In this document: positions 52,567 through 64,000 of the stretch, piece after piece | Layout of the letters: every line of letters begins with the position of its first letter | How positions within the stretch are numbered: position 1 is the first letter of the stretch | Assembly: GCF_006345805.1 (NCBI RefSeq) | Contig: NC_043023.1 | Location: forward strand, 10,106,001-10,170,000 | DNA length: 64,000 nt | Source of the DNA: Octopus sinensis | Lineage: Eukaryota | Reading direction: 5' to 3' | Program-made: the position numbers and the translations under genes | The notes under the pieces: generated by a model | Database searches by the model: none | What the model saw: only the letters and a program-made list of their open reading frames with translations | Told to the model about the DNA's origin: nothing

Positions 52567-55500
52567 ATGATAAGTGATTCTCTCAAAATGAATAATTTAA
52601 CTGAATCAGAAAACCTTGATAACGAGAAAAAGCCATATCACTGTAATATCTGTGGAAAATCATTTTCTTACAGTAGTGACATTGCTAGACACAAACGTAC
52701 ACATACAGGAGAGAAACCTTATCATTGTGAGATCTGTGGTAAATCATTCTCTGTAAGCAATATCTTAACTGATCACATACGTACACATACAGGAGAGAAA
52801 CCTTATCATTGTGATATCTGTGGTAAATCATTCTCTCAAAGCAATATCTTGACTTTACACAAGCGTATTCATACAGGAGAGAAGCCATATCATCGGGAGA
52901 TCTGTGGTAAATCATTCTCTCATAATAGTTATTTGGTTACACACAATCGCATTCATACTGGTGAGAAACCTTATCATTGTCATATCTGTGGTAAATCATT
53001 CTCTCATAATCGTCATTTGGTTACTCACAATCGCATTCATACTGGTGAAAAACCATATCAGTGTGATATCTGTGGTAAATCATTCTCTCATAATGGTCAT
53101 TTGGTTACTCACAATCGCATTCATACTGGTGAAAAACCATATCAGTGTGATATCTGTGGTAAATCATTCTCTCATAATGGTCATTTGGTTACTCACAATC
53201 GCATTCATACTGGTGAAAAACCATATCAGTGTGATATCTGTGGTAAATCATTCTCTCATAATGGTCATTTGGTTACTCACAATCGCATTCATACTGGTGA
53301 AAAACCATATCAGTGTGATATCTGTGGTAAATCATTCTCTCATAATGGTCATTTGGTTACTCACAATCGCATTCATACTGGTGAAAAACCATATCAGTGT
53401 GATATCTGTGGTAAATCATTCTCTCATAATGGTCATTTGGTTACTCACAATCGCATTCATACTGGTGAAAAACCATATCAGTGTGATATCTGTGGTAAAT
53501 CATTCTCTCATAATGGTCATTTGGTTACTCACAAACGCATTCATACTGGTGAAAAACCATATCAGTGTGATATCTGTGGTAAATCATTCTCTCATAATGG
53601 TCATTTGGTTACTCACAATCGCATTCATACTGGTGAAAAACCATATCAGTGTGATATCTGTGGTAAATCATTCTCTCATAATGGTCATTTGGTTACTCAC
53701 AATCGCATTCATACTGGTGAAAAACCATATCAGTGTGATATCTGTGGTAAATCATTCTCTCATAATGGTCATTTGGTTACTCACAATCGCATTCATACTG
53801 GTGAAAAACCATATCAGTGTGATATCTGTGGTAAATCATTCTCTCATAATGGTCATTTGGTTACTCACAAATGCATTCATACTGGTGAAAAACCATATCA
53901 GTGTGATATCTGTGGTAAATCATTCTCTCATAATGGTCATTTGGTTACTCACAATCGCATTCATACTGGTGAAAAACCATATCAGTGTGAAATCTGTGGT
54001 AAATCATTCTCTCATAATGGTCATTTGGTTACTCACAAACGCATTCATACTGGTGAAAAACCATATCAGTGTGATATCTGTGGTAAATCATTCTCTCATA
54101 ATGGTCATTTGGTTACTCACAATCGCATTCATACTGGTGAAAAACCATATCAGTGTGATATCTGTGGTAAATCATTCTCTCATAATGGTCATTTGGTTAC
54201 TCACAAACGCATTCATACTGGTGAAAAACCATATCAGTGTGATATCTGTGGTAAATCATTCTCTCATAATGGTCATTTGGTTACTCACAATCGCATTCAT
54301 ACTGGTGAAAAACCATATCAGTGTGAATCTGTGGTAAATCATTCTCTCATAATGGTCATTTGGTTACTCACAAACGCATTCATACTGGTGAAAAACCATA
54401 TCAGTGTGATATCTGTGGTAAATCATTCTCTCATAATGGTCATTTGGTTACTCACAAACGCATTCATACTGGTGAAAAACCATATCAGTGTGATATCTGT
54501 GGTAAATCACTCTCTCATAATGGTCATTTGGTTACTCACAATCGCATTCATACTGGTGAAAAACCATATCAGTGTGATATCTGTGGTAACTCATTCTCTC
54601 ATAATGGTCATTTGGTTACTCACAAACGCATTCATACTGGTGAAAAACCATATCAGTGTGATATCTGTGGTAAATCATTCTCTCATAATGGTCATTTGGT
54701 TACTCACAATCGCATTCATACTGGTGAAAAACCATATCAGTGTGAAATCTGTGGTAAATCATTCTCTCATAATGGTCATTTGGTTACTCACAAACGCATT
54801 CATACTGGTGAAAAACCATATCAGTGTGATATCTGTGGTAAATCATTCTCTCATAATGGTCATTTGGTTACTCACAATCGCATTCATACTGGTGAAAAAC
54901 CATATCAGTGTGATATCTGTGGTAAATCATTCTCTCATAATGGTCATTTGGTTACTCACAATCGCATTCATACTGGTGAAAAACCATATCAGTGTGAAAT
55001 CTGTGGTAAATCATTCTCTCATAATGGTCATTTGGTTACTCACAAATGCATTCATACTGGTGAAAAACCATATCAGTGTGATATCTGTGGTAAATCATTC
55101 TCTCATAATCGTCATTTGGTTACTCACAATCGCATTCATACTGGTGAAAAACCATATCAGTGTGATATCTGTGGTAAATCATTCTCTCATAATGGTCATT
55201 TGGTTACTCACAAACGCATTCATACTGGTGAAAAACCATATCAGTGTGATATCTGTGGTAAATCATTCTCTCATAATGGTCATTTGGTTACTCACAATCG
55301 CATTCATACTGGTGAAAAACCATATCAGTGTGATATCTGTGGTAAATCATTCTCTCATAATGGTCATTTGGTTACTCACAAACGCATTCATACTGGTGAA
55401 AAACCATATCAGTGTGATATCTGTGGTAAATCATTCTCTCATAATGGTCATTTGGTTACTCACAATCGCATTCATACTGGTGAAAAACCATATCAGTGTG

Positions 55501-61500: not shown

Positions 61501-64000
61501 CTCACAATCGCATTCATACTGGTGAAAAACCATATCAGTGTGATATCTGTGGTAAATCATTCTCTCATAATGGTCATTTGGTTACTCACAATCGCATTCA
61601 TACTGGTGAAAAACCATATCAGTGTGATATCTGTGGTAAATCATTCTCTCATAATGGTCATTTGGTTACTCACAAACGCATTCATACTGGTGAAAAACCA
61701 TATCAGTGTGATATCTGTGGTAAATCATTCTCTCATAATGGTCATTTGGTTACTCACAATCGCATTCATACTGGTGAAAAACCATATCAGTGTGATATCT
61801 GTGGTAAATCATTCTCTCATAATGGTCATTTGGTTACTCACAATCGCATTCATACTGGTGAAAAACCATATCAGTGTGATATCTGTGGTAAATCATTCTC
61901 TCATAATGGTCATTTGGTTACTCACAAACGCATTCATACTGGTGAAAAACCATATCAGTGTGATATCTGTGGTAAATCATTCTCTCATAATGGTCATTTG
62001 GTTACTCACAATCGCATTCATACTGGTGAAAAACCATATCAGTGTGATATCTGTGGTAAATCATTCTCTCATAATGGTCATTTGGTTACTCACAAACGCA
62101 TTCATACTGGTGAAAAACCATATCAGTGTGATATCTGTGGTAAATCATTCTCTCATAATGGTCATTTGGTTACTCACAATCGCATTCATACTGGTGAAAA
62201 ACCATATCAGTGTGATATCTGTGGTAAATCATTCTCTCATAATGGTCATTTGGTTACTCACAATCGCATTCATACTGGTGAAAAACCATATCAGTGTGAT
62301 ATCTGTGGTAAATCATTCTCTCATAATGGTCATTTGGTTACTCACAAACGCATTCATACTGGTGAAAAACCATATCAGTGTGATATCTGTGGTAAATCAT
62401 TCTCTCATAATGGTCATTTGGTTACTCACAAACGCATTCATACTGGTGAAAAACCATATCAGTGTGATATCTGTGGTAAATCATTCTCTCATAATGGTCA
62501 TTTGGTTACTCACAATCGCATTCATACTGGTGAAAAACCATATCAGTGTGATATCTGTGGTAAATCATTCTCTCATAATGGTCATTTGGTTACTCACAAT
62601 CGCATTCATACTGGTGAAAAACCATATCAGTGTGATATCTGTGGTAAATCATTCTCTCATAATGGTCATTTGGTTACTCACAATCGCATTCATACTGGTG
62701 AAAAACCATATCAGTGTGATATCTGTGGTAAATCATTCTCTCATAATGGTCATTTGGTTACTCACAATCGCATTCATACTGGTGAAAAACCATATCAGTG
62801 TGATATCTGTGGTAAATCATTCTCTCATAATGGTCATTTGGTTACTCACAAACGCATTCATACTGGTGAAAAACCATATCAGTGTGATATCTGTGGTAAA
62901 TCATTCTCTCATAATGGTCATTTGGTTACTCACAATCGCATTCATACTGGTGAAAAACCATATCAGTGTGATATCTGTGGTAAATCATTCTCTCATAATG
63001 GTCATTTGGTTACTCACAATCGCATTCATACTGGTGAAAAACCATATCAGTGTGATATCTGTGGTAAATCATTCTCTCATAATGGTCATTTGGTTACTCA
63101 CAATCGCATTCATACTGGTGAAAACCATATCAGTGTGATATCTGTGGTAAATCATTCTCTCATAATGGTCATTTGGTTACTCACAATCGCATTCATACTG
63201 GTGAAAAACCATATCAGTGTGATATCTGTGGTAAATCATTCTCTCATAATGGTCATTTGGTTACTCACAATCGCATTCATACTGGTGAAAAACCATATCA
63301 GTGTGATATCTGTGGTAAATCATTCTCTCATAATGGTCATTTGGTTACTCACAATCGCATTCATACTGGTGAAAAACCATATCAGTGTGATATCTGTGGT
63401 AAATCATTCTCTCATAATGGTCATTTGGTTACTCACAATCGCATTCATACTGGTGAAAAACCATATCAGTGTGATATCTGTGGTAAATCATTCTCTCATA
63501 ATGGTCATTTGGTTACTCACAATCGCATTCATACTGGTGAAAAACCATATCAGTGTGATATCTGTGGTAAATCATTCTCTCATAATGGTCATTTGGTTAC
63601 TCACAACGCATTCATACTGGTGAAAAACCATATCAGTGTGATATCTGTGGTAAATCATTCTCTCATAATGGTCATTTGGTTACTCACAATCGCATTCATA
63701 CTGGTGAAAAACCATATCAGTGTGATATCTGTGGTAAATCATTCTCTCATAATGGTCATTTGGTTACTCACAACGCATTCATACTGGTGAAAAACCATAT
63801 CAGTGTGATATCTGTGGTAAATCATTCTCTCATAATGGTCATTTGGTTACTCACAATCGCATTCATACTGGTGAAAAACCATATCAGTGTGATATCTGTG
63901 GTAAATCATTCTCTCATAATGGTCATTTGGTTACTCACAATCGCATTCATACTGGTGAAAAACCATATCAGTGTGATATCTGTGGTAAATCATTCTCTCA
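52567..64000 (+). CDS. Giant C2H2 zinc-finger array (about 135 fingers, 84-bp unit), runs off the window and is interrupted by ten -1 deletions
   Basis: [18 protein letters not shown] leader; 5 distinct fingers (the 4th is C->R broken); then about 130 copies of YQC(D/E)[15 protein letters not shown](N/K)(R/C)IHTGEKP; splice acceptor ends at 52290. Confidence 0.85.
52976..64000 (+). repeat. 84-bp coding minisatellite, about 11 kb
   Basis: Near-identical units, synonymous sites included. Confidence 0.97.

Follow-up and report, generated by a model that had tools for sequence, protein, structure and literature searches.

The window analysed here, the whole 64,000-nucleotide stretch of the Octopus sinensis genome at positions 10,106,001 to 10,170,000 of contig NC_043023.1 (assembly GCF_006345805.1), ends in a very long tandem array of C2H2 zinc fingers preceded by a probable start codon and a short leader. 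Tandem Repeats Finder, run on the 64-kb window, reported a single tandem array at 52626..64000, with a period of 84, 135.5 copies and 97% matches. The units were also cut one by one against the array consensus, which gave 135 full 84-bp finger units from position 52621, followed by 47 nt of unit 136; since the array is truncated by the window end, its length of at least 11.4 kb is a lower bound. The gene and its array are laid out as follows.

50595-51472, plus strand: repeat of about 880 bp upstream of the gene (second copy at 44187-45061)
52291-52587, plus strand: upstream finger exon/leader, with homology to the leader of the in-window paralog and to those of O. sinensis paralogs
52588-52620, plus strand: probable start codon and short leader (alternative ATG at 52567; no effector domain)
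52621-53043, plus strand: units 1-5, divergent or transitional fingers by their distance to the consensus
52876-52959, plus strand: unit 4, first Cys replaced by Arg in the unit table
53044-63953, plus strand: units 6-135, the homogenised array (Tandem Repeats Finder and segmentation)
63954-64000, plus strand: partial unit 136, with the array running off the window (segmentation)

Translated in the unit frame, each unit is a canonical finger, and the consensus has the form C-X2-C-X12-H-X3-H with a TGEKP linker and a 28-residue period. The recognition helix of the consensus is HNGHLVT (-1 H, +1 N, +2 G, +3 H, +6 T), and it is kept in 128 of the 130 units numbered 6 to 135, the exceptions being unit 30 (G>R) and unit 52 (H>Q). 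In the finger open reading frame (ORF), Pfam recovered C2H2 finger families only (zf-C2H2, E=9e-112; zf-H2C2_2, E=1e-173) and found no KRAB, SET, SCAN or BTB domain, while the nearest PDB sequence matches were ZNF568, the designed protein Aart (2i13) and PRDM9. Units 1 to 5 lie 24, 26, 20, 10 and 5 nt from the array consensus. The original prediction for this DNA, made from its letters alone, had proposed an array of at least 135 fingers continuing beyond the window, with this same helix in about 130 units, and both points were borne out. It had also described the first five fingers as ordinary and divergent; the divergence holds (5-26 nt), whereas "ordinary" does not fit unit 4, where Arg replaces the first zinc-binding Cys.

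Upstream of the array, the zinc-finger (ZNF) frame is open just from 52504, and a polypyrimidine tract with an AG ending at 52290 may constitute a splice acceptor. Annotated O. sinensis relatives begin MNKLTE... or MNHLTK... at the position matching 52588 of the window, and they consist of little beyond an 11-residue leader and the fingers. The element of about 880 bp, whose two window copies are 94% identical, is also found upstream of each of the O. sinensis paralogs described below (loci L001-L003, at about 9450-10860). It contains sequence serving as coding exon 1 (MGRGELYPFYPDTT...) in the O. sinensis models P0243 and P0254, and the window copy of this exon-1 sequence (51144-51266) carries an in-frame stop. 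Both models splice into the middle of a finger array and look unreliable.

The best protein matches to the leader plus units 1-2 were zinc-finger proteins of Octopus vulgaris, O. bimaculoides and O. sinensis, and none of the retrieved proteins was more than 78% identical to the window. Three O. sinensis loci (L001, L002 and L003) were compared with it. The flanks of L001 and L003 are 94-95% identical to the window and about equally distant from each other, so that both loci rank as paralogs rather than as a proven ortholog. L001 shows the same leader (…MNNLTESEN…EKPYHC) followed by 8 fingers diverse in helix and a stop, and L003 the same leader, 11 helix-diverse fingers and a stop. The window itself holds a further copy of this kind.

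33896-34690, plus strand: tandem paralog that shows the usual gene form of the cluster, a homologous leader preceding about 7 diverse fingers and a stop

Two fingers of this in-window paralog are degenerate, one with a shortened helix region and one short of the residue before the first Cys. A lone finger is present 1.5 kb beyond it (36177-36239, plus strand). As a separate observation, L001 and L002 (CM016885.1, 10.05 Mb and 10.41 Mb) are 28-kb loci 356 kb apart with the same protein model, and they look almost identical over the compared stretches, the cause being either segmental duplication in the very recent past or an assembly segment entered twice.

The finger type of the array recurs in the O. 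sinensis paralog genes: the array unit differs by 3 nt from one L003 finger, a distance of 3 nt also separates each of window units 3 and 4 from fingers of L001, and two adjacent L001 fingers at that position already share an identical protein sequence. By the near-identical L003 finger and the normal 8- and 11-finger paralogs, the array goes back to a finger that, like the cluster gene it belongs to, is ordinary, and that was amplified about 130-fold. Large clustered ZNF expansions are known in cephalopods (PMC9795677, PMC13218726). The octopus C2H2 clusters of O. sinensis, O. vulgaris and O. bimaculoides share with this locus the leader MNxLT...EKPY, the finger types, the flank and the clustering, but their genes carry 8-11 diverse fingers and a stop, whereas the window copy has one type amplified about 130-fold.

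Within the array, three common variants distinguish the units, namely T>A at column 72 (N>K, codon 24; about 53 units), T>A at column 24 (D>E, codon 8) and C>T at column 73 (R>C, codon 25; at a CpG), and 76 N-type units are intact. The E and C subvariants are confined to K units, mostly in the 5' two-thirds of the array, and this nesting argues that all three polymorphisms are real. E variants end after unit 88, the last 45 or so units being almost pure N and K. Adjacent K units were observed 8 times against 21.2 expected (P<5e-5), and the autocorrelation of N/K labels was negative at lag 1 (z=-5.2) and positive at lag 2 (z=+2.7). Since N- and K-type units alternate beyond chance, the amplification unit is largely a two-finger dimer of 168 bp. 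Label autocorrelation revealed no higher-order period beyond the dimer and no duplicated blocks, which would be a sign of assembler looping, and twelve singleton variants are each present once; together, the uniqueness of the singletons and the lack of long-range periodicity argue against an assembler looping over a block.

The array is not one reading frame as assembled, because ten units (21, 36, 45, 49, 56, 74, 95, 126, 131 and 133) measure 83 bp and the segmentation of the 135 units found no insertion. From the ATG at 52567 or 52588 the frame runs through 20 fingers and then a +1-frame tail to a stop at 55650: the first deletion (unit 21) shifts into the +1 frame of the unit, which is open, and the second (unit 36) into a closed frame. 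Owing to the absence of stops in the +1 frame of the array, single-base frameshifts do not end the ORF at once, and the longest open stretch (1454 codons, 58774-63135) is a mix of two frames. The ORF of more than 3800 aa that had been expected is thus absent from the assembly. The shortened units are listed below, and the sequences spanning the deletion products are CAGTGTGAATCTGTGG, CTCACAACGCATT, CTCACAATGCATT, CTCAAATCGC, GGTGAAAACCATA and GAAAAACATATC.

54304-54386, plus strand: unit 21, 83 bp, GAATC in place of GAAATC/GATATC; first frameshift, closing the 20-finger stretch
55563-55645, plus strand: unit 36, 83 bp, C lost at column 69, outside any base run; shift into the closed frame
56318-56400, plus strand: unit 45, 83 bp, GAATC on the rare E+K+C haplotype
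56653-56735, plus strand: unit 49, 83 bp, CC reduced to C at columns 10-11
57240-57322, plus strand: unit 56, 83 bp, GAATC
58751-58833, plus strand: unit 74, 83 bp, GAATC
60514-60596, plus strand: unit 95, 83 bp, CACAATGC, derivable from a K+C unit by AAA to AA
63117-63199, plus strand: unit 126, 83 bp, linker A5 reduced to A4
63536-63618, plus strand: unit 131, 83 bp, CACAACGC at the N/K site
63703-63785, plus strand: unit 133, 83 bp, CACAACGC at the N/K site

These deletions are not scattered evenly over the unit. Seven of the ten fall on, or are equivalent to, the three variant columns (4.7% under the null, P=5e-8), and nine lie inside runs of identical bases (P=1e-3). Furthermore, the GAATC product occurs in 4 units on two haplotypes (E+K and E+K+C), for which a single mutation spread by exchange is insufficient. 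As a local control, 2.1 kb of unique flank (50595-52710) was aligned with two O. sinensis paralogs and the changes private to the window were counted, with the following outcome.

Flank, window-private changes: 49 substitutions, transitions to transversions 31:18, 3 indels (one of 1 bp)
Array, units 6-135: 15 substitution events, transitions to transversions 4:11, 10 indels (all 1-bp deletions)

Both 1-bp indels (P=4e-4) and transversions (P=0.018) are over-represented in the array relative to the flank, and the indel-to-substitution ratio of the array is about 10 times higher. The placement of the deletions on variant columns, together with both excesses, makes the deletions and many of the singletons unlike ordinary evolution at this locus. 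Most of the ten deletions and many singleton substitutions are probably consensus errors, such as a long-read assembly makes where polishing is not possible. The true sequence may therefore be one open frame, although such openness would follow from youth and not from selection. T>A changes account for 7 of the 15 distinct substitutions in the array, including the two commonest polymorphisms (N>K and D>E), which appear real; consensus error accounts for this transversion bias only in part.

The same 15 substitution events in units 6-135 comprise 3 synonymous, 12 missense and 0 nonsense changes, against 20%, 75% and 4% under a null of uniform mutation of the consensus, and the omega-like ratio is 1.07. 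The absence of nonsense changes is compatible with chance (P=0.51), and three of the missense events remove zinc ligands (C7S, C10S and H23Y). Helix codons received 2 of the 12 missense events against 25% expected (P=0.38), so that the helix shows no conservation beyond that of the other parts of the unit. It is invariant because the whole unit is equally invariant, which is evidence of youth and not of selection on specificity. In this context, the claims of the original prediction about variation fared unevenly. D/E, N/K and R/C are indeed the common variation, at codons 8, 24 and 25, and synonymous sites are homogenised, with just three synonymous singletons in units 6-135. Its contrast with PRDM9, which diversifies at contact residues, is descriptively correct, given where the common variants lie and the low count of helix changes; its statement that variation is almost confined to non-contact sites has, on that same count, no statistical weight.

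Taken together, these data are best explained, with a probability that we put at roughly 0.6, by a very recent, runaway tandem amplification of one finger in the finger exon of an octopus-specific, effector-less C2H2 cluster gene. One finger of a cluster ZNF would have been amplified in register with the 84-bp period, mostly as the 168-bp pair. The mechanism would be unequal exchange or template switching between finger repeats, as in other minisatellite-like zinc-finger arrays, and the resulting array, 11.4 kb or longer, behaves as a young satellite would, a coding exon caught in the act. Dimer periodicity, the gradient of divergence at the 5' end, the lack of detected constraint and the normal form of the paralogs fit such satellite-like expansion best, and on the same evidence (the omega-like ratio of 1.07 and the 8- and 11-finger paralogs included) a zinc-finger exon turning into satellite, which the original prediction had offered as its alternative, becomes the best-fitting reading. 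A protein of at least 135 fingers, if made, is unlikely to have a selected function.

Several points weigh against this explanation. The copy number and the deletions are those of the assembly, and the 3' end of the array, its stop codon and its total length fall outside the window. The selection tests have little power, being based on 15 events of which some are probably errors, and a function of the whole array may be compatible with an unconstrained single finger among 130. Finally, A5 runs are shortened at 1 of 130 sites and GAAATC sites at 4 of 13, a disparity that does not fit simple homopolymer error as the source of all deletions but that mis-registered pile-ups of different unit types might produce.

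The alternative that survives best is a sub-case of the amplification just described, in which the ten frameshifts are real mutations, some of which unequal exchange has multiplied, and the array is dead, non-coding DNA, a pseudogene or satellite. Ten 1-bp deletions with zero insertions, the same GAATC product seen four times, and the zinc ligand lost in unit 4, followed by three more ligand changes within the array, all speak for it. We nevertheless regard it as unlikely, since one event and its spread would not place GAATC on both the E+K and E+K+C haplotypes, the indel-to-substitution ratio stands about tenfold above the flank, and the coincidence of deletions with unit-type differences (P=5e-8) is what mis-registered read pile-ups would give.

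The length of the array could also be an artefact, a much shorter homogenised array having been over-expanded or mis-joined by the long-read assembler. The error-like spectrum suggests poor consensus support in the array, its last 45 or so units are nearly without distinguishing variants, and it is not closed inside the window. However, the twelve singletons, each seen once, indicate that no large block was duplicated, and the variant pattern lacks long-range periodicity. Moreover, the order of N, K, E and C types is complex enough to anchor long reads over the first two-thirds, and the divergence gradient at the 5' junction looks natural. On balance, such an artefact is rather doubtful.

Least tenable among the rivals is a giant protein that is actually translated, with 135 or more fingers over at least 3800 aa, multivalent on a TGN-type 3-bp-periodic repeat, with the frameshifts as assembly errors: its fingers are fully canonical, its ATG and leader are conserved with annotated relatives, the deletions resemble consensus errors and no nonsense substitution is present, but zero nonsense among 15 events is expected by chance, any young array has an open frame as a matter of course, mutations hit three zinc ligands and the omega-like ratio is about 1, the window has no long TGN tract (TGA/CAT maximum, 21 bp), the relatives carry 8-11 diverse fingers, nothing comparable was seen among the best-scoring poly-finger proteins of the 1.84-billion-protein library described below, and the frame as assembled is broken after finger 20. 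If the locus were nonetheless translated, an improbable outcome, its contiguous zinc-finger array would be longer by far than any other known, and the protein would coat a 3-bp-periodic TGN-type repeat or act as a multivalent chromatin scaffold. Coding in other frames or on the other strand was rejected, since the +1 frame, although free of stops and translating into a hydrophobic repeat of 28 aa, is a by-product in the array, and the minus strand of the array is closed. The annotated O. vulgaris protein P0283 starts with a similar +1-frame translation of a finger.

Regarding the DNA target, the usual recognition rules predict a TGN-type triplet for a helix with T at +6, H at +3 and H at -1. 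The TGN-type target is a weak guess, and the repeats of the window speak neither for nor against it. A run of 130 identical fingers would need a 3-bp-periodic tract of about 390 bp. In the 52.5 kb upstream of the array, where (AT)n is the prevailing repeat (155 tracts), perfect tracts of the TGA/CAT class number 6 and reach at most 21 bp, equal to 7 fingers. The supposedly abundant (TGA/CAT)n target of the original prediction is therefore sparse and short in the window, fitting 7 fingers and not 130.

The scale of the array was compared with known proteins by scoring a two-finger query against 1.84 billion representative proteins and examining the 150 best matches, the summed score favouring many fingers. 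Among these matches, a 5807-aa model whose modules are scattered had the most fingers (78), no contiguous run was longer than 28 fingers, and one identical helix occurred at most 7 times. The large matches were rejected as long arrays, being concatenated or scattered-finger models. With 135 contiguous fingers, 128 of them with the same helix, the array is far outside the gene predictions sampled, with the caveat that gene predictors tend to fail on such arrays. A search of 5.8 billion proteins with 15 array units yielded nothing above 63% identity and was dominated by generic vertebrate KRAB-ZNFs, and HNGHLVT was absent from all proteins retrieved. The leader plus fingers, used as query, was likewise dominated by generic vertebrate KRAB-ZNFs, with no near-identical homogenised protein, and a 53-nt stretch of the array unit had 0 matches in a metagenome scan. 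No direct precedent emerged from literature searches on zinc-finger-derived satellites, octopus satellites and record finger numbers. Minisatellite-like behaviour is known for zinc-finger arrays of about ten to forty fingers; what is new here is the scale, the complete homogenisation, contact residues included, and the clear derivation from a normal paralog.

PRDM9 alleles have roughly ten to twenty fingers. Like the octopus array, PRDM9 has head-to-tail 84-bp finger units of very high nucleotide identity in one exon, and template switching or unequal exchange alters the length of its arrays (PMC8600002). The fingers of PRDM9 vary mainly at the contact residues -1, 3 and 6, whereas 128 of 130 helices are identical here and the common variants lie outside the helix. 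PRDM9 also has PR/SET and KRAB domains, in contrast to an ORF in which Pfam shows finger families alone, though exons far upstream might still encode such domains, and the present frame differs from it in being broken as assembled. Canonical C2H2 poly-finger genes read composite sites with differing helices, and the paralogs are diverse in this way, unlike an array that repeats a single helix.

The array resembles satellite or minisatellite DNA in its homogeneity over more than 10 kb, its dimer periodicity, its less homogenised edges and perhaps, on 15 events of which some are probably consensus errors, an absence of detectable constraint on the unit; it departs from such DNA in that the unit codes for an intact protein domain and lies in the frame of a start codon, and in that one locus is seen. 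LPA kringle IV-2 is a translated domain present as a variable number of tandem repeats, its copy number being set by unequal exchange and its kilobase unit containing introns. There too a whole domain is repeated many times in near-identical DNA, but translation is known for LPA, whereas that of the octopus array is hypothetical, and its 84/168-bp unit lies in a single exon. Designed polydactyl fingers such as Aart (PDB 2i13) have the same canonical framework and TGEKP linkers, with about 6 fingers at most, which differ from one another. At helix positions +2 to +5 the array has a GHLV core like that of designed GNN/TGN modules (xxGHLVx). To our knowledge, continuous docking of more than 100 identical fingers on DNA has no precedent.

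The ZNF cluster is embedded in transposon-rich DNA with non-LTR retrotransposon ORFs, intact or partial, and these and the remaining features of the window are listed below.

12407-15160, minus strand: non-LTR (long terminal repeat) retrotransposon ORF with endonuclease and reverse transcriptase, 917 aa
38697-41201, plus strand: non-LTR reverse transcriptase ORF, 834 aa
49792-50556, minus strand: non-LTR endonuclease fragment
683-1108, 4409-4810, 32663-33145 (minus strand) and 41213-41989 (minus strand): copies of a dispersed repeat, with no Pfam match
2306-2668, plus strand: ORF of three near-identical ankyrin repeats (Pfam Ank, E=4e-35), another internally homogenised stretch of a repeat domain

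The dispersed repeat is probably an element like a short interspersed nuclear element (SINE-like) or another octopus interspersed element, and its relative in L001 (12612-12757) contains FYVPPTQVPDEAGR... as a 63-bp tandem repeat. The (AT)n microsatellites are extremely dense at positions 1-52500 of the window, where perfect tracts of at least 5 units number 155 and add up to 2.9 kb, and they yield many long, spurious YIYIYI ORFs on both strands.

In brief, the scale of this array exceeds that of the usual zinc-finger minisatellites by an order of magnitude, inside an intact-looking gene. The error-like signature of the assembled frameshifts and singletons calls for caution with gene models and finger counts in cephalopod ZNF clusters. 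Should the protein be made after all, it would be unprecedented among poly-finger proteins. With its units still about 99% identical, the locus may show a satellite at its birth from a protein-coding exon, and it offers a concrete case for testing the limit to which finger arrays can grow before they die.

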